Source: Blastocladiella emersonii ATCC 22665
Taxonomy: Eukaryota; Fungi; Blastocladiomycota
Direction: 5' to 3'
NCBI GenBank assembly: GCA_025594325.1
Contig: JANHCV010000001.1
Span: 3,844,001 to 3,908,000, forward strand
DNA length: 64,000 nt
The translations under genes and the position numbers were made by a program. Shown one piece after another: positions 3,924 through 62,857 of this stretch. Each line of letters opens with the position of its first letter. The stretch's first letter is position 1. The notes under the pieces were generated by a model. That model was not told the DNA's origin, did not search any database, and was given only the letters and a program-made list of their open reading frames with translations.

Positions 3924-3945
3924 GTCTCGCACGCGTGTCTCGCAC
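3924..3945 (-). promoter_or_regulatory. Tandem GTGCGAGAC x2 (13-bp period) upstream of DNAJB13
   Basis: + strand GTCTCGCAC at 3924-3932 and 3937-3945, 129-150 nt upstream of the ATG at 3795. Function is inferred from recurrence only. Confidence 0.6.
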
Positions 3946-4057
3946 CCGCTCGGCGCAGCGGTTCTGCGGCTCCTGACCCTTGCACCATGTAAAAACTCCT
4001 GAAAGTGTATGTAGAGGCTATTATACAGGTTTAGGTATCACAAACTCTTCGCCTCGC

Positions 4058-5360
4058 CTAGGACGGCGAAGCAGCGGGCTTCTCGACGCGGCGCGCACGC
4101 AACGTCGCGGGCGAGATGGGCTCGACGGGGCTGCCGCCGAGCGCGAAAAAGGTCTGGATCGGGCTCACCTTGGGCGAGACGGCGAGCGAGCTCGAGAGCG
4201 ATCGGCGATGCAGCGCCATGGACGCAGACGTGGAGGCCGACATGGACGAGGAGGCGGAGAGCGAGGCGTGGAGCTTGGGCGGGACGCGGATGAAGGGGAT
4301 GAAACCCCACTTGGTCTGCAGCGTCACGCCGGGGACGCGGTGCACGTAACGCATCCGGATGTACATCATCGACGTAAGCCACATGGCGCCCGCGGTCGCG
4401 GTGCCGACGTGCCACACGGCGTGCAGGTGCAGCGGCTCGAGGTACTCGCAGAAGATCTGGTCGAGTTCCTACAGGTGCCTCGGTGTGAGATCGAGTTGCG
4501 ACCACGCGAGCTGCAACCGTACCCATGCGACAAACGACAGCGTCAGCGTGAGGAACCCGAGGAGGAACGAGCGGCGCAGCTTGGGCTCGTGCTTCGTAAA
4601 CGGATACGGCAGGATCAGGATGGGCGCGATGAGGACGCCGAACACGATGTGGAACGTCACGACGAGCCGCTGCGTGACGTGCAGGATCGAGTAGGCGATG
4701 CCAGAGATCCACATGGCGGCGGGCAGCCACGCGTAACGCTTCTTGGCCGTGTTCTCGATGGCGAGGTAGCTGAAGACGAGCTCTATACGTCAAATGTTGC
4801 GTGAGTGTGAGACCGCCGTGAGCCTGAGGCTAAACGACCGTACCCATGTAGATCATGGGCAGCTCGTCGAGGAGCTGCGCCTCGTACTGCAGCGTCGCGT
4901 GGAAGCAAAAGCTGCCGATGCCCACGAGCATGAGGAACAGCGCCGCGAGTCCATAACGCCGCTCCACTACGGACCGCACATGTCAGTATGGCCCGACAAC
5001 GGCGGGAGTAGAGCCCAGCGCACAGCCAAACTCGCGCGCCTTGATGAACATAGTCGCGGCGACCGCGATGGTCACGGCGTTGGACGTCGCGTTGAAGAAT
5101 TCCGCAATGTACGGCGTGACGACGTGGTCCAGCTCGCACCAGTCAACGGACGCGGTTGCCGGGCCCCAGATGCCTATCACGTTCGACACTGGAAGCGCGA
5201 GGGGTCCGCGTCAGCGTCCATCGCGGTCCGAGAGACACGGGTGGCTCAGCGCACCTGGCCCGAACCGCGTGATGGTGTGCGTGTGGGTGTGGCGGTGGCC
5301 GTGAGTCGCCGGGGCCGACTGGTTGGGTAGTTCATGGCCCAGAGGTGGTGGTTGATTCAT
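4058..5360 (-). CDS. Alkaline ceramidase (ACER3/YPC1/YDC1, CREST family)
   Basis: [49 protein letters not shown] and LHAVWH Zn-ligand motifs. Introns 5189-5254, 4967-5023, 4783-4843 and 4469-4522. The start at 5360 is the least certain part. Confidence 0.9.
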
Positions 5361-5661
5361 GGAGAGATGCGTGTAAGGGAGAAGCGGAAGCGGTGCGGCC
5401 GGAACGAGAAGGTCAGGCGGGAGCAGGCTCAAGTAGTGTGAGTGCCATTTCTTTGCAGCAACTGCCCGCTCGTGCTGACGTGGGTGAAAGTGTGGCTCGG
5501 GCGGGGCTCCCAAGACGGACTGACAGGTGCTGCGCCAACCGACGCGTCGGTCATTTTTGCTCGCTGTCTCACCCGTCCCGTCGGATGACTCGCCAACTGT
5601 CTCGCGCCTCTCGAGCGGGAGCAAGGACAAGATACAGGCACTTTTATTCATCACGCACACA

Positions 5662-8600
5662 TCAGTAGTTTTCCAACACGAGCTTGGGGACAATGTTCAT
5701 GGACTGCAGCTCCTGGAACAGCAGCTTGGCCGCGTACGGGATCTGCATCTGGGTCATGTCGGCCGACGACTTGCAGTGCTGGCACCACCCGGGGTACCCG
5801 AGGAGCCCGCACCGCTGGCACACGTTGGCCGTGAACGCGTCCGACGACAGCATGAGTCGCTCGAGGAGCAGCTGCGCCGCGCCGTGCCCGATGAGGCAGT
5901 CGCGCTCCATCTCGCCGAGACGCAGGCCACCGTCGCGCGAGCGACCCTCGGTCGGCTGCCGTGTGAGGACCGCGCGCGGACCACGCGCACGCGCGTGCAT
6001 CTTGTCCATGACCATGTGCTTGAGCTTCTGGTAGTAGACGGGCCCGAAGAAGATGTACGCCGACAGCGGCTCGCCCGTGATGCCCGACGTGACGTAGTCC
6101 TTGCCGGCGTAGTTGAACCCGTGCTCGACGAGGATGCGCGACATGTCCTCGACCTTGGACCCGCCGAAGGCGGTGCCGTACTGCAGCTCGCCCTTGAGCA
6201 CGCCGGCCTTGCCCGCGAGCAGCTCGATCATCTTGCCGACCGTCATGCGCGACGGGAACCCGTGCGGGTTCATGATGATGTCCGGGTAGATGCCGCGGTC
6301 CGTGAACGGCATGTCCTCCTGGTTGACGATGATGCCCGTGACGCCCTTCTGCCCGTGGCGCGACGAGAACTTGTCGCCGAGCTCGGGCCGCCGCGTCTGC
6401 CGCAGCAGCACCTTGATGAGCGTCGAGTCGTCGTGCGTCGTGGACAGCAGGATCTTGTCAATGTACGACGGCACGGGGAGCTTGTACGTGAGCGGCTCGT
6501 CGCGGAACGTAACCGCGTTCGGGCCGGCCCCCGACACGGTCGGCGCCTGCTTGTTGACGTACACCTGGCCCGCCGACACGAGCCCGCCGACGGCACCGAG
6601 GCCGTCACTGTCGAGCGCCGCGTGCTTGAACTGCCCCTCGATCGGGTCGCTCAACCGGTCGTAGGTGCCGTTCGAGTACCGCTTGATCAGCGTGGCCGAC
6701 TTCTTGAGCACGACACACCGCCCGAACCCGCGGTCGAGCGACGCCTTGTTGAGGACCAGCGCGTCCTCGATATCGTACCCTGAGTACGACATGACCGCGA
6801 GCATGGCGTTGTGGCCCGCCGGCACCTTGTCGTAGTTGATGAGCTCGATGGTCTTGGTCTTGACCATGGGCTGCTGCGTGTAGACGAGGAGGTACAGCAG
6901 CGTGTCCATGCGGTCGAGCTGGTTGTACGCGATGGCGCCCATGGCCTGCTTGCCCATGGCGCACTGGTACGTGTTGCGCGGCGACTGGTTGTGGTGCGGG
7001 TACGGGATGAGGCCGGCGACCGCGCCGAGCACCGTGAACGGCTCGATCTCGAGGTGCGTCGTCGACTGGGCGTCAATGTCCTTTTCGTACAGCGCAATGT
7101 GGATGTCGTTCTCCTCGTTCACGTCGAGGTACTCGACCAGCCCGCACTTGAGGAAGTCGTCGAACACCATGAGGCCGGCGTGCAGCTGCTGCATGTGGTG
7201 CGCCGTCACGCGCGGGCGGCCGTTCTCGACAATGATGAGGGGCCGGCACACACGGCCGGCGTCGCACGCGACCTGGATCGCCTGCATCGACGCCTGCGTG
7301 TAGATGGACACGAAGGGCGAGATGGCGCCGGCGCGGCGCATGCGGCGGAGCCCCGCGACGAACGGCTGCGGCTGGTGCGTGATGCCGACGAGCAGGCCGT
7401 TGAGGAACACGAGCCAGCCCGTGTGCAGCTCGTCGCCCGTGACGAGACCCGCGTCGCGCACGCCAAGCGACAGCATGAGGCGCACGATCGGGTCCTCGTC
7501 CGAGTTGGTGGTGATGTGCGTCATGAGCGCGAGGTTCTTGACGAGACCGCACGCCTCGCCCTCGGGCGTGTCCGAGGGGCACAGCATGCCCCACTGCGAC
7601 GGCTGCAGCGAGCGCGGGCCCGACACCTTGCGCGTCTTCTCGAACTGCGAGCTGATGCGCGTCATCATGCCGAGCGCCGACACGTACGACAGCCGCGTCA
7701 GGGCCTGGGTGATCCCGGCGCGGTCCATCTTGAACCGCTTGATGTTCCAGTTGCCCGACGAGATGGGCGCGGCGAGGCCGTTGGTGATGGTCATGGCGTG
7801 CGCCGCGACGTGCGTGATGGCGTCGAACGCGGCTGCGCGCGAGCGGAGCTTGAGGATCTTGTCGATGTTGGACTTGACGTCCTCGGTGAACTTCTTGAAC
7901 GAGTCGTCGAAGAGCAGGGCGAGGAGCTCGCCGGCCAGCTCGAGTCGCTTGTTGCCGAGGAAGTCGCGGTCGTCGACCTCCTTGCGCGACGACGAGAGCA
8001 GGACGCGGCGGCACATGAGGCCGAGGTAGATGCATTTGGGCTTGGTGAAGAGGCCGCGCGCGGGGACGTGGGCGAGCACGACGCGGGCGAGGATCTCGAG
8101 CACCTCCTCGGTCCGCGACAGCTGGCCGCGGTACCCGGCGCCGCCCTTGGTGGGCTTGTAGCGCGTGCTCAGGTACTCGAGCGCCTGGTCCTGGGTGAAG
8201 ATGCCGAGCGCGGACGCCTCCTCGAGCGAGGGCGCGAACAGCTCGACGAGCTCGGCGTTGCGGCCGACGACGAGCTGGACCACCTCCACGTCCGAGGTCA
8301 TGCCGAGACCGCGCATGATGACGACGATCGGGATCTCCTCGGTCAGCGTGTTGGTCTTGAGGTACAGCTTGCGGTGCTTGAGGATCAGGTTGGTTTTGGA
8401 CTTGACCTCGGTGGTGGACGAGGTGACCGAGGCGACGATGCCGCCCTTGGAGTCAATGTCGACGATGATGCGGTTCTTGGACAGCTGCTCCTGCACGAGG
8501 ATCACCTTCTCGGAGCCCTTGACGACAAAGTAGCCTCCGGGGTCGAGCGGGCACTCGTCGAGCGCGCACAGCTCGGCAAACGACTTTTCGTGGAGCACGC

Positions 8601-9139
8601 AGTTGCTGGAGCGCAGCATGATCGGGATGCGACCGATGACGACGCCCTTGGTCTTGACAATGTGCTTGTTGCGCACGTACTCGACGTCGACGTAGATGGG
8701 CGCGGCGTAGGTCATGTCGCGCAGGCGGCACTCGTGCGGCGTCAGCGGGCGGCTGATGCCGACCGGCTCGGTCACCTCGGGCCGCCCGACGCGCACCGCG
8801 GTGAACCGGAGGTAGAACTCGGGGTCGACGTCCGACTCGATGCGCGAGTTGGCCGCCACGATGGCGGGCATCCCGTGCTGCACGAACCAGTCGAACGAGT
8901 CGACGTGCTGCTTGACGAGGCCCTTGACCTTGAGGAAGGCAGGGAGCAGCTTCCACTTGTCCTAGACGCGATGGGTGGAAGACGATAAGCGACGGGGTGC
9001 GGGCGAGTGGTGGTCGTCGAAGCAAGTGCAAGCGCACCTCGACGGTCGGGACGGCGTCGTTTATGGCCTTGCCGCCGAAGCGGGCGTTGTCCTGCCAGTC
9101 GACGGCGGGCTCTACGACGTCCGGCTCGTTCTTGATCAT
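5662..9139 (-). CDS. RPC2: DNA-directed RNA polymerase III second-largest subunit
   Basis: [46 protein letters not shown] and C-terminal Zn ribbon CQRC..CQHC. One intron, 8962-9037. Confidence 0.97.
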
Positions 9140-9576
9140 GGCGTTGGTGGGGCGAGCGAATCGATGGTGGCCGGGCGATCACTTGCGGAGCGGGTGATGG
9201 GGATGCTCGTCAAGGCGAGAGCGCAGCGCATGCAGGAGGGCCAAGGAAGACGGCCGAGTCGAGGGTCCCGCGTGGTGCGCCGACGATGCACCGAGTGGTA
9301 TAGGGATGCAGGCTCTGCTACGTCGTCGCCGAGGGTTCGCGGATGACGCACGGCTGGTCAGAGCAGCGAGCGCCGCGAAGCGAGGCGGCCGTTTAAAAAA
9401 GTGTTGACTCGCACCACGCGCGACAATGTGACCCGTCGATCAGCGCTTCCTCTCTCTCCCTCCATCGCTCGTTGATGTTTCCCACGCGATGCTGCGAATG
9501 GAATGAATAGACTTGCGGCAATGATTTATCTTCTATGAAACAACTGCAATCACACGCCGAGACCGCGTCATGGCGA

Positions 9577-12500
9577 TCACAGCGAGATGGACATGAGCTC
9601 CTTGCGCAGCTTGTTGACTTCGCTACACGGACACGCATCGTCAGTCTCGTTCCCGACCCGTCCCAGCGACAAAAGCCAGCGTACCTCGTGAGCTGAACGT
9701 TCTCGTCAATCAGCTTCTGCGTCTCGTTCTCGCGCGCCGCGACCTGCTTGGTGAACTTGCGCTGCACCGTCGACAGCGTCTTCTCGAGGAGGTCGCGCTG
9801 CCGGAGCTCCTGGTCGCGCTCGTCGGTGAAGGCGCCCGGCTTGTTGCGCGACCGCGTCTGTTTCCGCCGCTGCGGCGTCGCAGCCGCTGAGCTCGAGCTC
9901 GCCCCGTCCTCGGTGTTGCTCCCGAGCCGCCCAGGTGCCGACGAGATGTGCGGCTTGGCCTTGGCCGGGCTCGCCGGCGGCGTGTCCTGCAGGTCGGCGA
10001 CCGACGACTCGGGCGGGTCGGGCTGCCCGCAGTACTTGTGGAACAGGGCGCGGACCGAACGCTTGAGGCTGTTGGGGTCGCGGACGTGCTGCGAGAGGGC
10101 AAGCACGTCGCGGTGCAGCGTGTCGACGACGAGCCGCGCGACCGCGGTGCGGCGCTGCTGGACCTCGAGCTCGCGCTCCGTGCCCGCGAGCTTCTGCAGC
10201 AGGTCGTCGCGGGTGAACCGCATCGCGCTGCGCGCCTTGAGGTACCCGGCGAGCTCCACGTCCATGTCGGCGAGCTGGCCCTGCAGCCGCACAATGTCCT
10301 GCTCGCGCGGCTCGATCTGCTTGCGCAGCTCGACGATCTTGTAGTCGAGGACGAACTTGAACTTTTCGAGCTCCTTGTTCTTCTTCTTGAGGTCCGAGAT
10401 GCGCTTCTCCTTGTCCTCGATCGTGTCCTCGCGCTCCTGCAGCTCGCGGCGCGCACCGGAAATGTCCTTTTCCAGGGTCTTGATGATGGCGGTCAGCTTG
10501 CGCTCCTCTTGCGACATCTTTTGGATCTCGACCTTGTTGCTCTCGATCTTTTTGAGCAGCGCGTCGTACTTTTTGTGCATCTCCTCGTTCTCCTGCTGAA
10601 TCTGCTTGAGGCTGATGCGCTCGTCCTTGAGCCGCTGCTCGTAGTAGTACTGCAGCTGCAGCACCTCCTGGTCCGTGGACGAGTCAATGTCGAGCGACTT
10701 GGACAGGAAGTCGGTGCGCCGCTGGCCCAGGTCGGCCTCGAGCTACATGTGCACTTCGTGAGTGGAGCGTCGCGAGCGACTATCAACCAAAACGTACCCC
10801 GCGCATCTCGATTTCCTTTTCCTCGATGCGCTTCGAGTAGAAATCGCGCAGCGCGTCGAGCTCCTCGTCGAGCGAGTTGCGGATCAGGTTCATGTGGCCG
10901 TGCCACTGGCCACGTTTGGCCTCGAGCGCCTCCTCGAGCGCGCGGTACCGCTCCTCCTCGGCCTTGAGCTTGAACTTGGTCCCTTCCTCGAGCTTCCTGC
11001 GCTCGGTCATGTGCTTGTCGCGGAGCTCGGCGAGCCGCTTGCCGTTGGCGATGACGCTCGTCTCGTACGCCTGGCGCAGCACCTCGTTCTCGGTGGCGAG
11101 CGCCTCGATGTCGTGCGCGAACCGCTCGGTCGTCTCGCGCGCCTTCTGCGAGTAGGTGAGCTCGCGCTGCTCGAGCACGCGCTCGTTCTCGAGGCGGATC
11201 TCCTCGACCTTCTGGCGCAGGTCGTTCATGACCTTGAGCTGGTCCTTGACGTCGGACCGCAGAGCGAGGATCTCGTCCGAGTAGGCCGTGTCGCCGACGC
11301 GGTCGCGCTTGGACCCGGCGCCGCCGCGCAGCTCCTTGTCGTGGATGCGCACGATGCACAGGCTGCCATCGCTCGACGTGGTGAAGAGGAACTGCTCGTC
11401 GAAGCTCATGCGGAGGCGCGTGATGGGCGCGTTGTGCGTGTGCAGGGAGATGACATCGGCGGCGGCGGGCGGCGGGTACCGGATCGCCTTGACGTGGCCC
11501 GTGGCCGTGGCCGCAACCACGAGCTTGCCGCTGCGCCCGACGCACAGCTGCGACACGCTCGCGTGCACGTTGATCTCGCGCGCGATCTGCGACTCGCGCA
11601 CCTCGATCACCTTGCCGTCGCCCGTCCCGACGTACATGGCCTTCTCGGCGCTGAAGATGGCCGTCTGGAACTGCGACGGGTGCGACTGCTCCGAGACGCG
11701 CCGCTGCGTCCGCAGGTCCCACTCGATGACCACGCCGTCGTGCGCGACCGTGAGCAGCCGGCAGTCGTCGTTGGACCACGCCACGGAACGGACCTTGCCC
11801 GCGTGGCCCTTGAGCGTCACGATCAGGTCGAAGCTCCACGTCGACCGCACCGTGACTATGTTCTCGTGCGCAACGACAAAGTACTGCCCGCCGTTCGAGA
11901 AGCGGCACTACACGGGCGAGGTCGGTGAGGTTGTATCGCGGGCGTACGGGTCAGGCGCGCGAACGTACCTCGCGACACCCGCGGGCATTGTACTCCCAGT
12001 ACGGCCGAATGTCGTCGAGCAAGATCTTGAGCAGCTTGATACCCTCGGCGAACCCGACGAGGAGGAACAGGCCGCTCGGGTGGAACGCGATGCTGTATGG
12101 CTCGGATTTGAAGAACTTGGCGATCTCCATGGTGTTCTCGAGAAAGTTCCAAACGCGGACCGACTGGTCGGCGCCGCAGGTCGCGAGGAGCGGCTTGCGG
12201 ATGCACACGTCGAGGCCGGTGATGGCCGAGTGGTGGGCCTGCGACAGCTTTTCGACCTTGATGTCGTCGCTCTGCAGCGAGGTGAGCGCGATCAGCTGGT
12301 TGTTCTCGAGCGAGCACACGGCGCTGTCCTCGTTGGACGAGATGGCGATGCCGCGGATCACAGCGTTCTCGACCTTGACCTCCTTGGCCGACCGGTACAG
12401 CGTGCTGTCGTCGGCGCGCTCCCACACCTGCACGAACCCGTTGTTGGACCCGGCAATGAAGCCGTTCTGGCCGGCGCGCAGGCACGTCAGGTAGTGCGGC

Positions 12501-13279
12501 CGCACGTGCACCTCGTTGGTTAGGCCTGCCATGAGCTCGAGCTTGAGCTCAGCGTTCTCGTAGATGAGCAGCTTGCCGTCGTCGGTCGACACGGCGATGC
12601 GCTCCGAGCTGAGCCACGCGTGCGCCATGTTGTTCTACACTCGGGCAGCGCGTCAGTCCCGGCGCATCGGCGGAATCTCGAGTAAACGTACGCGGTGATC
12701 CGTCTTCTGGAACGTCATGGGCTTGAGCGTGCCCTCGGTGTAGCGGTAGATGCGAAAGATGTTGTGGCCGACGACGCACAGCTGCGGCACGTTCTTGTCG
12801 AAGGGGTTGAAACTGACCTGGAGCACGCGCACGTTGGCGGCGTAGTTGAGCTTGAGCGATCCGTACACCTTGCCCTTTTCCCAGTTCCAGAGCTGGAGGT
12901 GCCAGTCGGGCTCGGCCGACTGCGTCAGGAGGAACTTGTTGTCGTTGGACAGGGCGACGCTGACAATCTCCTTGCAGTTCTGGGCCGCGTCGTCGTCGCG
13001 CAGGAGCTTCTTCTTTTTGAGCGTGTGCGCGTCGAAGATGGTGACGACGGCCTTCTTCTCGCCCTTTTCCGCGACGGCGATGAGGCGCGACGACGAGGTG
13101 AGCGCCGTGACGCTGCCGCCCTCGCTCAGCGAGATGAAGCGCTGCGACTTTTGCTCGACATTGTACACGATGATGCTCGAGCCCGCCGGGTACAGGATGT
13201 GCTGGTCGTCGAGGTAGTGCAGCGCGTTCGGGACGGACCCGACCAGGCCAAAGACGTGGCTCTGCGATAGCGTCGTCAT
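9577..13279 (-). CDS. CFAP57: WD40-repeat plus coiled-coil axonemal protein CFAP57/WDR65
   Basis: N-terminus SHVFGL..LHYLDDQHILYPAG..YNVEQKSQRFI, WD repeats (HHSAITGLDVCIRKPLLATCGADQSVRVWNF) and coiled-coil tail (LEKFKFVLDYKIVELRKQIEPRE). Introns 12635-12691, 11908-11968, 10743-10797 and 9623-9684. Confidence 0.92.
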
Positions 13280-13386
13280 GGTCGACGATGCATGGGGTTG
13301 CTCTGGCGCTTCATGGATGTGGGTGTGGCAGCCTTGGTGGTGGCCGGATGAGATTGGCGGCGAGCGAAAAACGCGTCACGCCCGCG

Positions 13387-13407
13387 GGTGGAGACGCGGT
13401 GCGAGAC
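13387..13407 (+). promoter_or_regulatory. Tandem GAGAC pair (GGTGGAGAC / GTGCGAGAC, 12-bp period) upstream of CFAP57
   Basis: Exact GTGCGAGAC at 13399-13407 and a variant at 13387-13395, about 110-130 nt upstream of the ATG at 13279. Confidence 0.55.
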
Positions 13408-13834
13408 GCGTCTGTAAAATCACGTCGGCTCGCGTGACACCTTTGCCGATGCTTTTCCAAGCGTCGAAATTGGTCAGGATTGGCCTGAATAGTTGGCATG
13501 AGTTTGGTGATGTCTCACGCACGGTCTCCGCGTATTAGCAAGTGTTTCCAGGGTGTTGACGCTGACAGGGGTTCCATTTTCACGCTGGCGGACCGCGCAA
13601 GGGACTGTGGCGTCGGCTTCGTCAAGGTTTCGATCGATGGCCGGCGACGTTGACCGGCGACGTTCAAGTCTTGTCCGGTCGTCTCCGTGGTTGCTGACGA
13701 GAAAGGCGGCCACTCGCGCCCTCAGAACAGGTCCCACACCGCGCGCGTCGTTCTCACTCTCCCGCCATCATTCGCACATGAATCGCACCCAACGAGGGAC
13801 ATCCAACTCTCGATCCGACTTGCAAGCAACAACC

Positions 13835-15598: not shown

Positions 15599-15652
15599 AC
15601 AACGGGACTATATTGAGCACATAAAAAAGGACTAATTGCGTATCATCAAAGC

Positions 15653-22667: not shown

Positions 22668-23660
22668 TCGGTACGTTCTCGCACGTGGCAACGATCGTGG
22701 GATGGTGCGAGACTGACGACGACGCGCGGCCCTCTGTCTAGTGACATCCCATTCTTGTTCCGCGAACGCGCGCGCACCCGCGAGACGGGGTCGACTCGTC
22801 TCCACTTGCCCTCGCCGGCCGTGACCACGGCCACGGCGGCCATCGGCAGTTTTGCTTCTTTGCGCTCGCTCGCCTCGCTCATTGACATGTACAACCAACC
22901 ACACACACACACATTTTTACAGACGGCCTCCCTCCTTACCCACCCGCACATTCCAATAGACACACTCGGATTTCGTTTAGACCCTGATCTTGAAGTGTGA
23001 GACGAGCGACGCGAACGCTCCGTGATCGGGCGAGTGATGATCATTCCCACGGCGCGGACACGGCCCCCGAAACGCGAGCCCGACCCGCACGGCCGCGTGT
23101 CTCCCATCGTGCAACGAGCACGTCATGCCTCGCGACCGCTGCGACGGCTGCGTTCCCGCGCGGGCGGGCCAGGCGTCGCGGTCGCGTTGCCCCGAGCGAC
23201 CACGCCGCGGGAGGCGCGACGGCTCCGGGCGCGCAAGCAGCGCGGTCCAGGCGGCGCGGCGACGCCGGGCGCGGCGGGCGAGGCATCGGCTGGACCTCAA
23301 GGCGGCAAGGCCGGTGCGCGCGCACGAGTGCCGGCGGATGCAGAGCAGCAGGCATCGCGGCTCGTGGGTGTAACAACCCGGGAGCGGTGGCGCCACGGCC
23401 AAGGCCGCGTGAGAGGGGGTGCGCGGGGAGACGAGCAAGCGGGGAGCTTGGGGCGAGCTTAGACGGGGGCGCGAGCGGGGGACGGACGCGCGCGGCGACG
23501 AGGAGGACGAGCGGGGAGTGTGGCGCGGCGCGTGAGCGCGTGGTCGATGGGTGCCCGCAAAGGCAGGCACGGGGAACCCGATGGACGGCGCCGGGCGACC
23601 CGCGCGGCGAAGCGGCCACGGCAGCAGCAGCGGCGGTGAGCGACGCGGGAGGAGCGGGGC

Positions 23661-23668
23661 TATATAAG
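23661..23668 (+). promoter_or_regulatory. TATA box
   Basis: TATATAAG isolated in very GC-rich DNA, about 130 nt upstream of the ATG at 23796. Confidence 0.55.
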
Positions 23669-23795
23669 ACGCGTCGCCGCCCGCTCCCCCTCTCCTCTCC
23701 ATCATCACCGCCGCCATCAACGAGCACCGCGCTCTCTCTCCCCCTCGATACACCGACTGGTCTCCCTCCCCGATACACCACCCTACACCACCACC

Positions 23796-24791: not shown

Positions 24792-25107
24792 TCCGCGCGC
24801 CATGACCGTGCGCGCGATGCCGCCGCTGCCCCTGCACCAGAGCTATCCAATATTCTATGAACCCATCCCATCCTACCCAAATGTCTCAGTTGTCCAAAAT
24901 TCATAAACCCACGGTTTCCTAATCATCACCGTCTCGCGCCCTGTCCCGCGAGCTGGAACGCGTCGCTTAGAAACGCGTCTTGTCATGTGATGTAGAGAAC
25001 CTTGGCCTTCCCGCCCAGCGTTGCGCCACGTCGCCGCCGCCATCACTCCGCCTCCGCCGCGACTCAACGCACCACCGCACACGCAGCCAGCCAATGTAAC
25101 CAGCACC

Positions 25108-31498: not shown

Positions 31499-32308
31499 AT
31501 GGTGTGCCGCCTGTTCCTGGTCCTGCCGCTCTTCACGGCCGCGTGCATCGCGCTGCGCCTCTACTCGCTGGCCACGGCCGCTGCGCGCGCCCACACGCCA
31601 TCCTCGCCGTCGGGCTCGTCGCACCCGCAGCGACTCATGCTCGCGCTGTTCGGCCAGCCGCTCTTCTCGTGGGCCGTGGCCGGCGCCGCGAGCCCCGACG
31701 CCGACGACACCACGGGGTCCTACTCGTACGTGTCGTCCAAGGCCAAGGCGCGCCTGCAGCGCCAGAAGATGGAGCGCGAGCAGCAGCAGCAGCAGCAGCA
31801 GCACGAGCAGCAGCAACAGCAGCAGCACTTTTTCCAGCAGCAGCAGCGGAGGCAGCAGCAACAGCAGCACCAGCAGCGCCACTACCAGCAGCACCATCAC
31901 CACGCCGAGGAGCACCACCACCACTCGCAGCAGCAGGGCGGGTTCCATGGCGGCGGCGGCGGCGGGTTCGAGCACCTGTTCGAGGCGCTGTTCGGCGGGG
32001 CCAACGGCGGGTTCCAGTTCTCATTCAACGGCGGCGGCATGCCGTTCGGGGCGGGCGGGTTCGGCGGCGGCGGGCACCGGCCACCGCAGAGCAGCGCCGA
32101 GGAGGACTCGTCGCCGCGCTTCATCCAGAAGGCGCTCAACGCCTTCAAGCTGCCGCAGGACGCGACCCCGGCCGACCTCAAGAAGGTGTACCGCAAGCTC
32201 GCCATCAAGTACCACCCGGACAAGTGCAAGGAGGAAAAGTGCGAGACCAAGATGATCAAGGTCAACCGCTACAAGGAGGCCCTCGAGAAGTGGATGAAGA
32301 ACCGCTGA
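31499..32308 (+). CDS. Class III J-domain protein: hydrophobic N-terminus, polyQ/H tract, G/F-rich segment, C-terminal J domain
   Basis: ATG at 31499; DLKKVYRKLAIKYHPDKC at the extreme C-terminus; intronless. Confidence 0.8.
   Translation: MVCRLFLVLPLFTAACIALRLYSLATAAARAHTPSSPSGSSHPQRLMLALFGQPLFSWAVAGAASPDADDTTGSYSYVSSKAKARLQRQKMEREQQQQQQQHEQQQQQQHFFQQQQRRQQQQQHQQRHYQQHHHHAEEHHHHSQQQGGFHGGGGGGFEHLFEALFGGANGGFQFSFNGGGMPFGAGGFGGGGHRPPQSSAEEDSSPRFIQKALNAFKLPQDATPADLKKVYRKLAIKYHPDKCKEEKCETKMIKVNRYKEALEKWMKNR
31780..31935 (+). repeat. Imperfect CAG/CAC trinucleotide repeat encoding polyGln/His
   Basis: Runs such as cagcagcagcagcagcagcagcacgagcagcagcaacagcagcagcac. Confidence 0.85.
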
Positions 32309-39352: not shown

Positions 39353-39424
39353 TGTGATTTGGGTTGGGAGGGGCAATTGATGGATGATATTTTTTTTTGT
39401 ATTCGAGTGTCGGAGAGACGTGGG

Positions 39425-40302
39425 TTACGCGAACATCTTGCGCAGAATGTCCATGGCCTTGGGCTCGGCGATCATGTCGCTACACATGCACACATCGCTC
39501 GTTAGTCCCTCGTTCCTTGCAATCGAACCGCCGAGCACAGCGTACCCGTCCATGGTCAGCTCGGCCAGCGCCAGCGCCAGCTTGTCCTGGCCGACGGACC
39601 CCTCGACCTTGGCGAGGTACTTGGCGGCCTGCGCCAGCGTCGCGCTCGGCAGCGTCCCGTTGTTGGTCAGGATCTCGACGATCAGGTGCAGCGTCGCTTC
39701 GACCGTCTATGTCGCGAACAGTGAGCGGTGGTATAGGTGGAGGGGGTGCAAGCGCGCGTACCCCGGCGGCCACGGTGCAGCACAGCGCCCAGAACTCGGT
39801 CCACGCGATCGAGCCCTCGTTGGGCCACGAGCCGACCCTAGGTGTGCGGCGAGGCGGGTTAGGCGAGATCGGGGAGGGAGAGAAGGCGGCGCCGCGTACT
39901 TGAACACCTCGTCAATGGCCTGCAGCGGGATGATGGCGTCGTCGGCGATCTTGCAGATGGCCTCGCGCGACAGGTTGGCCGACTTGGCGCTCATCTATAC
40001 CGCGCGGCACGGGTTGTGAGCCATACCGATCATACCGTATCAATCACAGAACGACGTACCTTGAGGTACAGCGTCTCAAGCTGCTCGCGCGAGATGCTGG
40101 AGACGTGGACCTGGCGGCCGAGGTCCTGCTGGCGCGCGAGGTTGTTGAAGTAGTCGGCCGACGCGGCCACGATATCGTCGGGCTGGTTCTTGATGATGAA
40201 CTTGGAGTAGTTCTTGAGAATGTCCGGGAACGCCGGCGGAATCTTGATCTGCTCGCGGCAGTATATTGGGTCCGCGGCGGCGAGGGACTCGGGCGGGGCC
40301 AT
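39425..40302 (-). CDS. ROPN1L: Radial spoke protein 11 / ropporin-1-like (RIIa D/D domain)
   Basis: IYCREQIKIPPAFPDILKNYSKFIIKNQPDDIVAASADYF is a RIIa domain; GSIAWTEFWALCC also fits. Introns 39995-40059, 39838-39899, 39707-39761 and 39480-39545 all join in frame. Confidence 0.85.
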
Positions 40303-40460
40303 GGTGACGGGGTTGATGCGTTGCAGGGTATTACGTCGCGCGCGCGCTCGAATATGAGCTGCGGGTTCAGGGGAAGACGGGAGGGGAGAGGGGAGAGCAC
40401 GATGGTCGCGGTTGGCGGCGATGACGCGACGCGACGCGACGCGCGCAGCGGTTTGCGGGA

Positions 40461-40480
40461 GTGGGAGACAGGTGCGAGAC
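40461..40480 (+). promoter_or_regulatory. Tandem GTGGGAGAC / GTGCGAGAC (11-bp period) upstream of RSP11
   Basis: Sites at 40461-40469 and 40472-40480, 160-178 nt upstream of the ATG at 40302, in a promoter shared with the divergent acyltransferase. Confidence 0.58.
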
Positions 40481-40609
40481 ATCACGTGTGGGCCCGGAAT
40501 TCGAATTAAACCTTGCTTCGCCCGCACGCCGATCTCTCTTCCTCTCTTGCTCGGCGACAGACCGGCATCCCATGTATCTCGAGCGGGCAGACTCGGCGCA
40601 ACCGTAACA

Positions 40610-41783: not shown

Positions 41784-41811
41784 TTGACAGTTATGGGGAT
41801 ACATTTTTGTG

Positions 41812-43814: not shown

Positions 43815-43907
43815 TCTATGTAAACAAACCACGCGCTTCGTATATTATCACACACACAAGAGTTGATTCGATTCACACCAGTCAAAAAAGGAAGAAAGTC
43901 TCGGACA

Positions 43908-50053: not shown

Positions 50054-50095
50054 GGTCAGGGCTGATCGAGAACGAGAGCAATACATTGACCGTCA

Positions 50096-51130: not shown

Positions 51131-51378
51131 GAGATCCGTGTGCGCTGCTTTCGTGACGGGTACGAGGGAGAGCGAGCCCAAGCAAGTCGACAGATCCGGC
51201 AGCGGCGCGAGACGCGTCAGACTTGGCATGTTGATCTGGTCAGGTGCGCCTGAGACTCGCCGCCCACCTTCGCGTCTCGGGTCGGTCAGCTCTCCCGTCT
51301 CTACCACCACCCTACCCATGCCATCGAAGGAAAGAAGCCGCTACTTGATGCAACACTAGATCAATCTTGCTCTCTATC

Positions 51379-54336: not shown

Positions 54337-55748
54337 ACGCCGCGAATTTATAGTGCGATATCCACACAAAGAACGGTCCCGTGCGCGTTTGCATCACGCT
54401 GTGGCGCAACGCGTCCCTCATGGGGCGCTGATGGCCGAGTTGATGTCTGAGTCTATCGTAACTGCGGCACCGCATACAAGGTAGGAGCGACGGTACAAGT
54501 CGGACGGCGAGATTGAGCCGAATTATTCACGCTGGCTAGAACGGCGACAGGGGGTACAAGTAGGTAAGGAGCTTGATGGGGGTGTTGGCACATCCGCCAG
54601 CACTTTAAGGAAACGGAGGCTCATATATCTTCTTAATTAGAGACGGTAATCTTCAGCAGCGCGGAAGCAGACGAACGCGTTCTGAACAGGCTGAGTTTGT
54701 CCATAGCAACGTGTCCCGTGACGTGAGATCAGCCCGCAACAACGCGTCGCCCCTCCGCCGCCGCGTGCTGGGCGCCGCCGCGCGCTGGGCGCCGCCGCTC
54801 CGCGATCAATAAAACCAGTTGGCGGGCCCCGCCCACCCACGTCTTGTTTCATTAACACTTATTATCCAGCACAACTTCAAAAGCACCTTTCTCGAGGCGA
54901 CTCTCGCGAGTTGTCGAAGACGGTCCTGGGTCGTCCAGTTGATGCAGGAGCGATGCCGCTACGTCGGACACGCAGACAGATTGGGTGCGAGATTGCTGCG
55001 GTCAAAGACCGGGTGGGCTTTCTCGCAATTCTGCTGTGACAATCGCGATCCCTTTGCCGGGGATGTTTTGCTACTTTGGCCTTGAGCCCGAGCTAGTGCT
55101 CTCGTGAAATTCCTCTCAGTTTAGGGTATATGACTGCCGTGATCGTCCGCTTGCGTACGCGGTGCGCCAGTGGAGACGACAAAATCTGGACGAGCGCCAG
55201 TCAAGCGTTGACGTCCATCCGCCCCAAGTTCACGACGCACAACCGTTCCGTCAACTGCTTCACGACCGTGTCGATCGTTCTCCATGTGGAGAAGAATCAC
55301 GAGCACGAGGGAGGATAAAGCGCGTGGGCCCGCCCCGGGTCTTAGCCCGGGCATCGCTTGATCGGCGTGCGGCGTGAACGATTTGTCGACGTCCGTGAGT
55401 GGCGAGCCTTGAGGATCGCGTTGTGCGGACAATGGGTTCTGGTCGAGGGTGGCGTGTGGGCGAGAGCGATCACCGCGCTTGGATCACGTTGTGGCGCAGC
55501 GCGTCCATCACCGCACGGGCGACTTGGGCAGCGTGTTCGCGCAACCGATCGCGAGAGCACGGGTTACATAGGTGGTAGTGGTGTTCGGCGTACCGTGATT
55601 GACGGTCGGTTCATTCCAGGTCGCTGCCCTCGCTCGCGGGAAGCGTGGAGAGGGTTAAGCTGTCGCAAGACGAATGCGCAATATCCGTTCAAGCACGCAC
55701 ACGTTATGTATTTTTCGAGCTTCGAGGGTCCACAAGGATGTAATACTA

Positions 55749-56109
55749 CTAGACATAATCGGCACCGCGCCCCCTTTGACGGCGTGTAGAGATTGAGCGT
55801 GGAGACGGCACGCTTGATGGGACATTAGCATCAAACGCCGCGAACGACGCGGCCAGGTCCGCCTTGTTGACGAGCGGTGCCTTCTTCTGCGATGCGGTAC
55901 TGCCATGCACAGCGCGGGGTGAGCGGGCGTTACTGCCGCTGCTGGTGCTTGCAACTGGGGTAGTGTTGGGAGCGGCGGGACCCGTTGGATAGAGGGGGCT
56001 CGGCTTCGTCTCCGCCTCAGCAATGCCTTTTTTCAGTAATGTCGCCCAGAGTTGATGGCGAGCGAATAGAAACGAAATCGACGACGGGCTTAATCTGGAG
56101 CTGCCCCAT
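55749..56109 (-). pseudogene. Possible small orphan gene broken by a 1-nt frameshift in an A6 run (or a sequencing error)
   Basis: TATAAA at 56219-56214 and ATG at 56109 (MGQLQIKPVVDF). Removing one A at 56028-56033 gives a 119-aa frame ending in TAG TAG. No homology recognised. Confidence 0.25.
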
Positions 56110-57072
56110 CTTGATTGTTGTTATTTAGTTTAGCTTGAATGCGGGTTTGGTCCGAAGATACAAGTCAGCAATGAGAGGTGAGAGTGGAGGTCTGCATGGG
56201 GAGGCCCGCGGCCTTTATAGTGACTGAGGCTCGGCACCAGCAGCATGAACGAGTGTACGTTGGACAACGAATGCGCATATTCGTTCGAGTGAATAGCTGA
56301 GCATCTACTTAAGACACGTGCCGTGTGGATACCTCACCAGCGCCTCGCGATCGCAACACTCATTTTGAGTCCAGCGTGGCTGGAAATCAGCCGTGCCAGC
56401 CATCGAGTATTCGCTCGAAAGCTTCTTTACGGAGAACCTTGATCATGTCCGCCACAAAATCGTCTGCGGGTACGCCGGCGAGCGAAGCACCGCATTTGAT
56501 CGCTCCGTCCAGCTTCCGGCTCGCCGATCGCTGGGCAACCAGCCAGTCCGCGAACGGCGACGGAACGGACCTCACACGCCTCTGCATTGATCGAGCTCAA
56601 GTCCGCGACCACCGTTCATGGACAAGGCGATGAGCCAATCCACCGCTCCTGACGCGCGGATGCTGCTGCCAACGACCCGCTCTCGCCCGCGGCCGACGCA
56701 GTCAAGCTTGACATCGCCAACCTCGAGAGGAGCGCGCTCCCCGCGTCCAGGTCGCACACATGCACGGGGTCACTGAGAGCAACAATCCCACCGCGGCGGA
56801 CAAGAAGCAGCGCGAGAAATCTCAGCGCGTTCAGTTCACAACGAACCAGGATCTTTGTTTATACGCCGCAGTGAGATCGACGCTCTAACGGGTGGTTGTC
56901 TCGCAGCGTGTCTCACAGGTTCGCGTCGCGTCGCGATATCACGTCTTGATCACGCGCGGGTGGCACTCGGGCTGCCCCCATCCCGAGCACCCGCGACTTC
57001 GCGCCTCGGCCTCTACGCCTCGCCGATCCGTTGTCCTGGATCACGTCCCAAGTATATGCAAACGAATGAATC

Positions 57073-60000
57073 ATGGCGCCAAAGGCCGGTCGCTGCGTCA
57101 ACGACCACATGGTCGGGATCCTTCAGGTGTGTGTGGAACGAGACCGCCACAGCGCGCTTCCGTGGTTGACGATGACAGGCTCCTCTCCACAGGACAAGCT
57201 AGCGAATCTCCTCAAGGAGCGTCCGGACTCGAGGATGCGCTTTGTCTACGAGAAGGCTATCAAATCGATAAAGGAGCATCCGACCCGCCTCGCGAACGGG
57301 ACCGAGGCCAAGAAGCTCAAACACGTTGGCGACTTTGTTGCGAGAGTCATCGATGAGGAGCTCGGCAATCTTGGGGCGGACGGCGACGGCGTCGGTGCCT
57401 CGAGCTCGCAGCGCGGATCGGCCTCAGGTACGCCTTCCTGGGACACGCAATGCTCGATGCGATCTTGACCGCTTCGGACCGCTTATAGCCTCAACCTCGC
57501 CGCAACGCGCACCTGCGAAGCGGACCTCCTCGAAACGGCCGCCGCTCGAGATCCCGCCACTGCCGGACTTGACGTCTTCGCGCAGCAGCGCGGCTGCACC
57601 TCGCACGAATCTCTCCGCGGCTGCACACGCGCAGAAGGCGGCGTCTGAAATCTTTGCTCATCTCGGCAACCCACCTCGGCCCGAGTCCGAGTCCGAGTTC
57701 GACGACGATGACGAGATTGTTGCCGTCCAGCCGGTCCCGCGACCTCCCGCTGCTACTTCTTCTTCGTCCTCGTCGCCGGCTGCTGCCTCCTCAAACGGGC
57801 GCAAACGCTCGAATGCTGCTTCGACCGACTCGGCCGCCGCCGCCGAACCCGCCCCGAAACGCAGCCGCGGCGGCATCTCGCGGGCGAACCCGCCGATGCA
57901 GGGCTCGGTCCCCTACGCGCTCCTTATGGCCTTTCTCGAGTGGTCGGTCGAGACGCCTCCGCGCGCCATGGTCACGCGCGCCGATCTCATTCTGCGCGCG
58001 CGCCGCTTCTGTACCGCCAAGGTCGATAACCAGGCGACGGCCGTTATCAAGCGGCTGCGGGAACACGAGATGATCTCGTCAGACGAGAGCGGCAAACTGC
58101 ACTCGCTCACGGCGGCCGGCACCGACCTCGCCCGATCCATTTACCACGAGCTGCGCCGGCTCAACCGCGAGGTGCAGTCGATCCCCGCCCTCGACGGCGT
58201 GCCGCCACCCGCTCCGACTGTCGTTCGCCCCAGCACCTCGTCGTCGGCTTCGACGGGCGCAAGTTCATCAGCCCAACGTCCACCCCGTCCCGCTCCCGTT
58301 ATCGGTCCGTCGCCGCTCGACCGCTGGGACAAGGAGATGGAGGCGCAGTGGGAGGTGCCGTACGAGCTCGAGTCGCAGCCCCGCCCGCCGCCGTCAGCCC
58401 GCTCGCAGGAGGTTTCGGGTTCGCAGTCGAGCCAGCACCGCACGGGCACGCGCGGGCGCGACCTCCCCGCGAGCCAGTCCTCGGTCAAGTCGACGTCGAG
58501 CCAGGTCGTTGTCCTCGACGACAGCGACGACGACAGCATCGCGGGCGGCCGATCTACTCGGCGTCCGCCCGCGGCGCAGTCGTCCAGCGACTCGGACGAC
58601 AACCTCGAGATTCTCGAGCCGCGTCTCGCCACGGCTCGGCCGATCCTCGAGCAGAACCGGAACCGCTGCGGCCCGTCGCCCATGATCGATTCGCTCGGCA
58701 GGGCTGACGGTTGGCGCGATTCGTTGTTCATCAGCGAGCACCTGCAGCTCGGTTCCGCCGCCGCTCCGTCACCTCGATCTTCGCCGCCTCGGCCGCAGCC
58801 CGCGTCGCAGAAAAAGGCCAACGGCACGCAGGCGGCCTCGTCCAAACTCGCTGCCGCCGCATCGGCCGCAGCAGCAACTGCAGCTTCGCGTCGGCACGCG
58901 ACCGCGAGTCCGATGCCTCGCGCTTCCGCCTCGTCCCAGTCGCAGTCCAAGTCGCAGTCGCAGTCACACTCCCAGTCGCACTCCCAACCAGCACCCTCGT
59001 CACGTCCATCCTCGGCATCCTCTTCCCTCTCCCGCTCGTCATCGACCTCGTCGCCGCCGTCCTCGTCGCAGCCGTCCTCGAGCCAGCCGTCGAGCCAGAT
59101 CGCGCAGGCCCGCCTGATCTCGACGCCACCGCCGCCCGCGCCGCCCGCTGTCCCGACGTGGACCCCGTTCCGCATCAACGTGCTACCGCCCAACTCGTAC
59201 GACGTCGTCCTGCTCGTCGACCACCGCGAGTTTGCGTCCAAGGGCCACTCCGAGTCCATGGCGCGGTACCGCAACGAGTTCGGCGTCCATGTCGAGCAGC
59301 AGGCGCTCGCGATCGGCGACATGCTGTGGGTCGCGCGGCCGCGTCCCGGGACCGCCGCCGCCGCTGCCCGGTGCGGGTACGTTGTGCTCGACTACATTGC
59401 CGAGCGCAAGCGGCTCGACGACCTGTACAGCAGCATCAACGACAAGCGGTGGTACGAGCAAAAGGCGCGCATGCAGGCGACGGCGCTGCCGCAGATCACG
59501 TACCTGGTCGAGGCCGAGCCCAAGAACCACCAGGTCAAGGACAACGACGAGTCGAAGCGCAAGGCCGCGGTCACGGCCACGACCAAGGTCGTGGCGTGGC
59601 ACAGCATGAACCTGCAGACGACGCGGTCCGCCGACGAGACGGTCGCGCTGATCGCGCAGATGACCAAGTCGATTGCGCGGCTGTGGGCGGGCCGCCCCGT
59701 GTACTACCTGTCGTCGAACCAGTTTCGCTCGGCCGACGAGTGGGCCCAGTTCAAGTCGTACGGGTGCGTCGACCCCGCCGACGGCACGCTGCGGCCCGTC
59801 TCAGCCGACGCCGCGGACGAGTTCTGCAACACGGCGGCGAGCATCGACCGGTGCGTGCACTCGCCGCACCTGCTGTACGAGGACTTCCAGGCGCTGTTCG
59901 TCAAGCAGCCCCAGATCACGGTCCACACCTACCTTGTCAAGCAGCTCATGATGGTGAACGGCGTGACGGCGGAGAAGGCCACCTTCATCGCCAACTACTT

Positions 60001-60181
60001 CAAGACGCCGCGGGCGCTGCGCGACAACTACCAGGCGCTGGCCGAGGACGAGCGGGGCCTGTTCCTCAGCAACTGGAGCGAAGACTACGAGAAGGAGAAG
60101 CAGGTTCGCCTCACCACACAGCAAAAGATTGGGCAAGCGGTCAGCATCAAGATCGCCGAGCTCTTCTGTAAGCAGCGTTGA
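57073..60181 (+). CDS. MUS81: Structure-specific endonuclease catalytic subunit Mus81
   Basis: N-terminal HhH (YEKAIKSIKEHP..EAKKLKHVGD), winged-helix segment, ERCC4 domain VLLVDHRE..LAIGDMLW..IAERKRLDDLYSSINDKRWYEQK and C-terminal HhH. Introns 57127-57192 and 57428-57488. Confidence 0.93.
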
Positions 60182-60201
60182 TATACCAAACAATTGCATG
60201 T

Positions 60202-62723
60202 CTATAGCTCGTCTCCATTAGGCGGAGCAACAATCACAACTGGTGGCCCATCGCCGTCGCCGTCATCTCTCGCGAGCGACTCTGACGATGGCGTGCTGGT
60301 GATCACGAACACGGGCGGCGGCGCGTCCGTCTCGACGGGGCTGAGCGGCGGCGCGTCGTCGGGCAGCTGCAGGATTGGGATCGAGGGGACAGGGAGGCTG
60401 CCGGTGGCCGCGGGCGGCGGCGAGGGCGCCGTCAACGGCAGCGAGCCTTGCCGCCCATCGGCAAGTTCGGGCCGCGAGTCGCCTGCTGCTGCTCCTGGCC
60501 GTGATGCAGAATCGATGTCGCCGAGGCCGCCCTTGGGGAACGCGTCGAACCCGGACATGCCGATCGACTCGGACCGGCCGTCGTTGGACAGCGGGTACAT
60601 GCCGAGACCGCCGTCGCCGCCGCCCCCGTCTGCCGTGTCGAAGCCCGTGTCCGGGTCGCCGAACCGATCGCGGCCACCGCGGCCCCATCCGCCACGTCCG
60701 AACCCGCCGCCTTCGCCGCCGTCGTCGCGGAACCCGTTAGACGACGACGACCCAAACTCCTTGCGCAGGGACTCCTCGCGCTGCTGCTTGGCGGTGGCGG
60801 TGGGATCGTCGTCCTTGATGAGCCCGTTCATGCGCGCAAACAGGACGCGCAGGATACGCTCCTTGTCGGTCCACGCGAGGTCGGCAATGTCGATCTTGGC
60901 CGCGTCGGCCACGGACGGGAGCGGGTCGTCGGACTTGGCGGGGGCGGGGCTGGGGCTCGCGGAATCGGCTCGGCTCTCGCCGCCACCGTGCTCGGAGACG
61001 GTGGTCGCGGATATGGGTTCGGGCGACGCGGCGCCGGGTGCTGGACTCACGCCGTCGAGGTGCACGGCGTGCGAGGTGCGAGGCGTCGGCGTCCGCGGGA
61101 CCGGCTGGTTGCCGAGCGAGGCAGCGCGGCGAGCGAGGCGGGTGTAGTGGTCGATGCGTCGCTTGCGCTCGCCGGCGTGCTCGCGGGCGATCTCGCGGCG
61201 GACGTGGTCGAGGGCGTCCATGAAGAATCGCTCGACGTCGGTGCGCTGTTTGAGGATGTGGGCGGCGAGTCGCTTGATGTGGCGCATCTCCTGAGCCTTG
61301 CGGTCGAGGTTGAGCTTGAGCTGAGCGGCGACGCGCTTGATGTCGTCGAGTTCCTGGTGCGCCTTCTTGCGGAGGATCTCGCGCTCGACCTCGAACTCGC
61401 GGACGACGTGGCTGAGCGTCTGCTCGAGGGTGACGACCTTGGCCTCCATCTCGCGGATGATCTGGTTCTGGTTCTTGGCCGCGATGATCTTGTCGCGGAC
61501 GATCAGGTCGTTCATCTCCTTTTCCTGGACGAGCTGGGTGTTGTGGGTGGCGAGCTTGGCGTTCTGCTTGGTCAGGTCCTCGGTGGCGGCCATGTGCGAC
61601 TTGAGCGCCTCGACGAGCCGCACGTTCTCGCGGTACATGTCCTTGGTCGTCTCGTCGAGAGTGGCCACGGCCTCCTGGTGCGCCTTGGCCGCGAGCTCCG
61701 AGATGCGCCGGTTCGTCTCCTTCTGCATCCGCACCTTCTCCTCGAAGAACTTGCGCTCCATGCGCACCATGCTCTCCTTGAACCGGCGCTCCATCTCGGC
61801 CATCTGCGTCTTCTGCGACTCGATCTCCTTGAGCAGCTCGGCGCGTTTTTTCTACACAGGAAGCTGCGGGTCAGTATGCTGGCCACGGAGGGCGCAAAGG
61901 TGGGCGTACCTTGAAGTCCTTGACGGCCGCGACCTCCTGCTCCATGAGCCGGATCGCCGACTCCTTGTCGAGGATGATCCCGTTGAGTTCTACACAATAC
62001 CGCGTCAGCCAGGCCAAAGACGTCGCGGCGCGAGCGAGAATGCGTACCGTCAAGCTTGCGCGCGTAGCTGTTGTGGATCTCCTGCTTCTCGCGCTCGGTC
62101 TGGAGCTGGTTCTGGTCAATGGACGACCGCAGCGCGATGATCTCGCGGTCCTTGCGCTCCATCTGGTCGCGGAGCGCGCCCATGACTTCGATCTGTGCAC
62201 AGGTGCGGTCAGCAGTGAGTTTGGAGATGTCCGTGAAGAGCACACGCGTACCGCGTCCTTTTCTTGCTCGGTGCACTGCTGCTGCAGATCGGCGTTGGTT
62301 TGAATCCTATGCACCACCCCAATTCGTCATTACCCATGCCCATGTCACGACCCCACGCTCGACGCACAGGTTACTCAGCCGCTCCTTGTACAGCGCGAGC
62401 GCCTTGGACGTCGACTCGAGCGTGGTCGCGAGCGCGCGCTCGCCAACGGTCCCGTTCGCGAGTGCGTTGCGAGACCCGGCGATCCCGCGCATCGAGCCCG
62501 AGTTGGGCGCGTTGCGGACGGGCGACAGCATGGATTTACGGCGCGCGCCGAGCCGGGCGCTCCCACCGCCACCGTTCCGTGATGCATCCGCAGCAAGCGC
62601 GGCGGCGGTGGCGGCGGCCATGCCGGCCGAGGGCGCAGCTGGTGGACCGGTGCCCCCGCCCCCGTTACCGCTCGAGTTGAGCGCGCCGCCGGCTTTGGAC
62701 GCGCGTTTGACCGTGGAGGCCAT
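60202..62723 (-). CDS. BBOF1: Basal body orientation factor 1 (CCDC176)
   Basis: MERKFFEEKVRMQKE, LDETTKDMYRENVRL, KRLAAHILKQRTDVERFFMDAL and IDIADLAWTDKERILRVLFARMNG. Introns 62307-62367, 62193-62251, 61990-62047 and 61852-61909. Confidence 0.9.
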
Positions 62724-62836
62724 GGCGGGGAGATTGCATTTAGTGGTGGATTCGTGATCTGACTCAAGGGTCCTTAATTCACGGGATGGACTGACGTTGG
62801 AGGTGAAATGAAACGCGTCGCGACACGTCGCACGTG

Positions 62837-62857
62837 GTGCGAGACAGAGTGCGAGAC
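62837..62857 (+). promoter_or_regulatory. Tandem GTGCGAGAC x2 (12-bp period) upstream of BBOF1
   Basis: Exact copies at 62837-62845 and 62849-62857, 114-134 nt upstream of the ATG at 62723, within a spacer of only about 190 bp. Confidence 0.62.

Follow-up and report, generated by a model that had tools for sequence, protein, structure and literature searches.

The promoters of four flagellar genes in a 64,000-nucleotide stretch of the Blastocladiella emersonii ATCC 22665 genome (contig JANHCV010000001.1 of assembly GCA_025594325.1, positions 3844001–3908000, hereafter called the window) carry a short direct repeat, in which the 9-mer GTGCGAGAC or a close variant of it is found twice on the same strand at a distance of about 12 nucleotides (nt). 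Within the window, this tandem form is clearly associated with the flagellar genes DNAJB13/RSP16, CFAP57, RSP11/ROPN1L and BBOF1. The element very probably represents a functional protein-binding site with a preferred two-copy geometry of 12 base pairs (bp), embedded in a promoter module that further comprises the words ACGCGT and CACGTG, and we see a roughly even chance that this module is attached preferentially, not exclusively, to flagellar or zoospore-stage genes. A search for sequencing runs that hold this sequence listed three, all of DNA and all from the B. emersonii ATCC 22665 genome project, which submitted PacBio and Illumina data (PMC9730499), and listed none of RNA.

A first-pass annotation had pointed out the repeat upstream of the four genes and proposed that it marks a ciliary regulon; the positions and sequences it gave all proved correct when we scanned the window. 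Exact copies of GTGCGAGAC are present at 3924(-), 3937(-), 13399(+), 22705(+), 32239(+), 40472(+), 62837(+) and 62849(+). These are the eight copies counted in the annotation against about one expected by chance; we calculate an expectation of 1.72, and eight copies were reached in none of 100 dinucleotide shuffles. Same-strand GAGAC-N6-8-GAGAC pairs were observed six times against 0.79 expected, a number that was likewise reached in 0 of 100 shuffles. Among the 19 same-strand GAGAC spacings of up to 80 nt in the window, six fall at 11–13 nt and the remaining 13 spread over 23–77 nt, which results in a sharp peak at about 12 nt. All six pairs are located in 5' intergenic DNA, 108–249 nt from an ATG, five of them in the promoters of the four flagellar genes and the sixth in front of MUS81. 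As annotated, each flagellar gene has a pair with a spacing of 11–13 bp, about 108–178 nt upstream of its ATG, and the second CFAP57 pair and the degenerate MUS81 pair, which had been listed separately, are both real. The six pairs and the remaining copies of the 9-mer are the following:

3924..3945, minus strand: tandem GTGCGAGAC, two copies 13 nt apart from start to start, 129–150 nt from the DNAJB13/RSP16 ATG (3795, minus strand); sense.
13387..13407, plus strand: pair of GGTGGAGAC and GTGCGAGAC, 12 nt apart, 108–128 nt from the CFAP57 ATG (13279, minus strand); antisense.
13512..13528, minus strand: degenerate second pair, cGGAGAC ... GCGTGAGAC, 12 nt apart, in the CFAP57/DUF1365 promoter, 233–249 nt from the CFAP57 ATG.
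40461..40480, plus strand: pair of GTGGGAGAC and GTGCGAGAC, 11 nt apart, 159–178 nt from the RSP11/ROPN1L ATG (40302, minus strand), with CACGTG at 40483.
62837..62857, plus strand: tandem GTGCGAGAC, two copies 12 nt apart, 114–134 nt from the BBOF1 ATG (62723, minus strand); antisense.
56898–56914, minus strand: variant pair, tGTGAGAC ... CTGCGAGAC, 12 nt apart, 159–175 nt from the MUS81 ATG (57073, plus strand).
22676..22713: inverted pair, TTCTCGCAC ... GTGCGAGAC, enclosing CACGTG (22682) and GGCAAC, 10–46 nt past the PX-kinase stop codon.
32239..32247, plus strand: exact 9-mer inside the J-domain coding region, taken as a chance copy.

Relative to the gene, the pairs stand in sense orientation at DNAJB13 and in the second CFAP57 pair, and in antisense orientation at CFAP57, RSP11, BBOF1 and MUS81; as both orientations occur, a site on double-stranded DNA is favoured over an RNA signal. 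The CFAP57 pairs occupy a promoter that CFAP57 shares with DUF1365 (ATG 13835, plus strand), and the RSP11/ROPN1L promoter is bidirectional as well, being common to this gene and an acyltransferase gene (ATG 40610, plus strand). When seven regions were aligned, similarity was confined to the consensus GTGCGAGAC-A-nn-GTGCGAGAC-ATC, and since it ends at the motif, the pairs do not lie within a longer repeat or mobile element. A transposon-borne repeat was ruled out by the lack of similarity between the flanks. ATCAC follows the second CFAP57 pair and is found in the same place at RSP11. The element is non-random and independent of orientation, and its pairs are restricted to promoters, as had been claimed, while the exact 9-mer itself also occurs once in a coding region (32239) and once in a 3' flank (22705). 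These latter two copies had been described as solitary. The first lies inside a coding region; the second, 38 nt beyond the PX-kinase stop codon, is not quite solitary, having an inverted near-copy, TTCTCGCAC, at 22676. We found no gene that this inverted pair could serve over more than 1 kb downstream, and the next gene (ATG 23796) has a TATA box of its own at 23662.

The assignment of the four genes to the flagellum was borne out in each case. For DNAJB13/RSP16, the top solved-structure matches were DNAJB13 (1e-69) and RSP16 (2e-47), with DNAJB1 reaching only 1e-30, and the top matches of RSP11/ROPN1L were Chlamydomonas RSP11 (6e-12) and ROPN1L. BBOF1 scores 46.6 bits against PF14988, for which the cut-off is 24.5, and its orthologs carry the name BBOF1; CFAP57 is the name given by NCBI for the B. 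emersonii genome, and vertebrate CFAP57 orthologs match with E<1e-160. The deposited proteins P0001 and P0172 confirmed the start codons from which the distances were taken, with the BBOF1 ATG set at 62723 and that of RSP11 at 40302.

To assess how far the element is specific for flagellar genes, 17 promoter regions from the window were compared, four flagellar and 13 others. GTGCGAGA was found in all four flagellar promoters and in 0 of the 13 others, and TGCGAGAC in the same four plus a single other promoter, that of MUS81. The four flagellar promoters have the 10-mer GGTGCGAGAC in common; among 2379 other sets of four promoters, only two share any 10-mer and 13 share a 9-mer or longer word, corresponding to a permutation value of 0.1–0.5%. 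The tandem pair is present in 4/4 flagellar versus 1/13–14 other promoters (Fisher p ~0.002, calculated post hoc on four genes), and its distribution, although judged on this same post hoc basis, differs from that of a purely generic word. The region counted as the SGNH/MED16 promoter includes the first exon of MED16; its exclusion drops one match from the negative set and leaves the conclusion unchanged. The 5' flanks also separate the two classes of sites, with GTGC or GTGG common to the flagellar sites and varied sequences at the generic ones.

The pairs do not stand alone, as a CG-rich word is found on their gene-proximal side and CACGTG adjoins the RSP11 and BBOF1 pairs and also stands between the two copies of the inverted pair (22676–22713). 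The companion words beside the promoter pairs are the following:

3884..3893: CGCGTCGCG/ACGCGT word, gene-proximal to the DNAJB13 pair, ACGCGT (3888–3893) having its near edge 93 nt from the ATG.
13371..13376: ACGCGT, within GTGACGCGTTT, near edge 92 nt from the CFAP57 ATG.
40423..40445: CGCGTCGCG in three overlapping copies (GACGCG repeats), placed between the RSP11 ATG and the pair.
62813–62822: ACGCGT/CGCGTCGCG, with ACGCGT at 62813–62818 and its near edge 90 nt from the BBOF1 ATG, together with CACGTG at 62831–62836, which abuts the BBOF1 pair.
56922–56935: two CGCGTCGCG words beside the MUS81 pair.

The full module is present at all four flagellar genes and at MUS81. CGCGTCGCG as such is not over-represented in the window, with 20 copies observed against 17 expected, mostly in coding DNA, while all seven of its non-coding copies stand beside pairs (one at DNAJB13, three at RSP11, two at MUS81 and one at BBOF1). 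In three of the four flagellar promoters, ACGCGT occurs as part of GACGCGT, and the distance between its near edge and the ATG is 93 nt at DNAJB13, 92 nt at CFAP57 and 90 nt at BBOF1. This distance is held tighter than that of the GAGAC pairs, which suggests that the position of the word is fixed relative to the transcription start. ACGCGT is also found in non-ciliary promoters of the window, namely those of u260, the Dymeclin gene and the ceramidase-like gene. GACGCG-type words alone were rejected as a discriminator of flagellar genes, being present in 12 of the 13 other promoters. A looser version of the module was seen in the Dymeclin/Hid1 promoter (24792–25107), with GCGCGAGAC at -177, GAGACAT at -225 and ACGCGT at -150 and -135.

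The annotation had further stated that the element is not an RFX site, which holds for the four flagellar genes. A regular-expression scan of the window for the X-box (GTNRCC-N0-3-RGYAAC) returned three exact matches (1920, 23186 and 56769), none of them in the four flagellar promoters, and these four contain no match with one mismatch either. RFX half-sites (GTTRCY) are not enriched, GTTGCY being found 59 times in the window against 61 expected, and GTTGCY is absent from the DNAJB13, RSP11 and BBOF1 promoters.

Traces of the element were also detected at orthologous genes in related species. In B. britannica, the 10-kb contig with CFAP57 contains a single GAGAY-N6-8-GAGAY pair, in the GAGAT form, the two words 12 nt apart and 92–108 nt upstream of the ATG; 0.18 such pairs are expected for the whole locus, a figure to be read with the fact that C was widened to Y after the pair had been seen. 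The B. britannica loci have a guanine-plus-cytosine (GC) content of about 0.57 with AT-rich intergenic DNA, compared to 0.60–0.77 in B. emersonii, and with this lower GC content promoter words may have drifted from GAGAC to GAGAT along with base composition. In Allomyces, the sole TGCGAGAC of the 21-kb DNAJB13 locus lies 78 nt upstream of the ATG, CFAP57 is preceded by GTGTGAGAC at -116 and GGAGAC at -181, and BBOF1 has one GCGAGAC beside CACGTG, 565 nt upstream and 166–170 nt from a divergent IQ gene. Conservation is partial and patchy; it is strongest inside the genus, and the single word is better preserved than the pair. When relatives of CFAP57 were sought in metagenomes, one distant 4-kb contig was obtained, which was uninformative.

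We propose that a (T/C)GCGAGAC word, which appears to be in wide use in the promoters of Blastocladiomycota including Blastocladiella, takes a two-site form in the tandem GTGCGAGAC, both sites facing the same side of the helix. A putative sequence-specific DNA-binding protein would most likely read the pair as double-stranded DNA, because the element seems to work in either orientation, and two molecules or one dimer may sit on it 12 bp apart, possibly in a cooperative manner. As a guess, a site of 9 bp would fit a three-finger C2H2 protein. Together with the gene-proximal MCB/StuA-type ACGCGT/CGCGTCGCG word, which in three genes lies about 90–93 nt before the start codon, and with CACGTG, which is often beside it, the pair would form a module whose likeliest function is the strong, coordinated and probably zoosporogenesis-specific transcription of a set of genes to which flagellar genes belong alongside others.

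Several observations weigh against tying this module to flagellar genes. The association is drawn from four genes of a single window, and these had already been seen when the motif was picked. MUS81, a non-ciliary DNA-repair gene, carries the whole module; none of the open frames in the 2.6-kb gap to its left contains a Pfam domain, so that a hidden divergent ciliary gene is not supported and MUS81 has to be taken as a real exception. Single GCGAGAC or GAGAC words with varied flanks precede the start codons of DUF1365, PfkB, PX-kinase, ASH2 and, in two copies, Dymeclin by 88–225 nt. In Allomyces macrogynus, GCGAGAC-type words precede a SNARE gene (two, 23 nt apart) and the genes of ribosomal protein L35, a methyltransferase and an IQ-domain protein, and in Catenaria such a word precedes an unnamed gene. 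No pair was found upstream of Sorochytrium CFAP57 or upstream of BBOF1 in B. britannica, Catenaria and Sorochytrium. From the ciliary code that the first-pass annotation had proposed, the enrichment of the pair at the flagellar promoters of the window remains, whereas the module at MUS81, the single words at non-ciliary genes and the BBOF1 orthologs that lack the pair speak against an exclusive ciliary role.

These points lend themselves to a reading in which GCGAGAC, ACGCGT and CACGTG are general promoter or start-site-positioning words of a GC-rich genome and the flagellar association is an accident of the small sample. GAGAC is about twice as dense in non-coding DNA of the window (50 copies in 14.4 kb) as in coding DNA (82 in 49.6 kb), distances to the ATG are constrained, and the single sites 85–225 nt upstream of unrelated genes extend to the ribosomal protein gene of Allomyces. 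Two features do not fit such a vocabulary, namely the GTGC/GTGG flanks shared by the flagellar sites where generic sites vary, and the uneven distribution of the tandem 12-bp form over flagellar and other promoters described above. We regard this explanation as possible, if somewhat unlikely. Going beyond the preferential module that we favour, the composite of pair, ACGCGT and CACGTG might constitute a cis-code that switches on flagellar, and perhaps zoospore sensory, genes at zoosporogenesis through a factor that would be neither RFX nor FOXJ1; in this far-reaching form the claim seems unlikely to us. A still stricter version, a dedicated RFX-independent ciliary code of zoosporic fungi that marks the majority of axoneme and basal-body genes and hardly any others, would account for the pair on all four flagellar promoters and a single other one, for flagellar promoters with neither an X-box nor an excess of RFX half-sites, and for the pair at the B. 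britannica CFAP57 promoter; published work on the ciliome promoters of Spizellomyces punctatus, which found no enriched motif, leaves room for it (PMC10530576). It is at odds with the module at MUS81 and with the BBOF1 orthologs of three species that have no pair, and we consider it improbable. That the pairs have no function at all, having arisen when a 12-bp unit was duplicated by local slippage or as relics of mobile elements such as Helitrons, would agree with the near identity of the two copies within a pair and is nevertheless very hard to credit, as the flanks share no similarity, the spacers differ between pairs so that six independent events would have been needed to reach the same spacing and start-codon position, and a related pair lies at the same place in B. 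britannica CFAP57.

As to the remaining content of the window, the deposited gene calls span 5.6–26.6 kb and comprise an Rpb2-type polymerase subunit, CFAP57, DUF1365, PfkB, PX-kinase, a 260-aa protein and Dymeclin/Hid1. Genes outside this interval were taken from our own map, which was drawn from codon-position GC and Pfam matches and adds ceramidase-like, CLASP, J-domain, PX, Tubby, ASH2, acyltransferase, signal peptidase S26, Mpo1, SGNH hydrolase, MED16, MUS81 and MTHFR genes. No RNA family was detected in the window with Rfam. The gap between MED16 and MUS81 (54400–57000, about 2.6 kb) has a GC content of about 0.60, shows neither codon periodicity nor a Pfam or Rfam match and is unusually long for a compact genome. 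The Tubby family is tied to ciliary trafficking in animals; the Tubby-domain gene of the window (PF01167; 34990–36310) has no pair in the promoter that it shares with ASH2, and it contains an inverted GAGCGAGAC pair with copies 34 nt apart (35332 and 35366), apparently in an intron. BBOF1 and MUS81 are arranged tail to tail in B. emersonii (57073–62723), Catenaria (locus L004, 10001–14115) and Allomyces (locus L005, 10001–16161), so that this gene order is conserved across Blastocladiomycota. The B. britannica BBOF1 has a different neighbour, an axonemal-type dynein heavy-chain gene that ends 118 nt upstream of it and whose longest open stretch measures 2201 aa. About 220 nt upstream of Catenaria BBOF1 (L004, 9760–9790), GTTCGCAAC ... 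GGCAAC presents two RGYAAC-like half-sites in a loosely X-box-like arrangement.

To our knowledge, no mechanism has been described by which several hundred ciliary genes are coordinated outside animals and choanoflagellates. A defined 9-bp word with fixed geometry would provide a bait for purifying the factor and a pattern for scanning the 34-Mb genome, and it could be used to test if the ciliary programme of ancestral opisthokonts was retained, lost or replaced in fungi. Should the composite module prove to be the cis-code outlined above, it would represent a ciliogenesis programme independent of RFX and FOXJ1 in a fungus that still bears a flagellum. Should its words turn out to be general promoter vocabulary, they would be useful for start-site annotation and for expression constructs in an emerging optogenetics model, and would say little about cilia.

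Our literature searches found no flagellar promoter motif described for Blastocladiella, Blastocladiomycota or chytrids, and the only promoter analysis in a zoosporic fungus that we found reported none (PMC10530576). In that work, Coyle et al. (2023) applied HOMER to the ciliome promoters of S. punctatus and obtained no enriched motif, RFX or otherwise (PMC10530576). That study and ours ask the same thing, namely by which promoter words the ciliary genes of a zoosporic fungus are coordinated; unlike there, a candidate is at hand here, for four genes only and in another phylum.

Among better-known elements, the binding sites of T-box, CSL, SMAD, CP2, WT1/EGR, AhR and BANP proteins presumably bear no more than a partial resemblance to the motif. 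MCB (ACGCGT, bound by MBF) and StuA-type elements are targets of fungal APSES/KilA-N factors, which drive cell-cycle and sporulation programmes in other fungi. They resemble the companion word ACGCGT/GACGCGT, which three of the four flagellar promoters carry at -90 to -93, whereas ACGCGT is not the GTGCGAGAC motif and stands at several non-ciliary promoters as well. In Chlamydomonas, which is not known to rely on RFX for its flagellar genes and has XAP5 as a flagellar transcription factor, tubulin and flagellar genes are preceded by repeats of the GC-rich 10-bp 'tub box', an element linked to their induction following deflagellation. It shares with the Blastocladiella element the repetition of a GC-rich word about 10 bp long near the starts of flagellar genes, while its sequence and lineage are different. 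The RFX/X-box system of animals and choanoflagellates is similar in being a short element, placed within about 100–200 nt of axonemal start codons in either orientation and, probably in both cases, read by two DNA-binding domains; the X-box, however, is an inverted repeat, whereas the Blastocladiella element is a direct repeat of GTGCGAGAC with its copies 11–13 bp apart.

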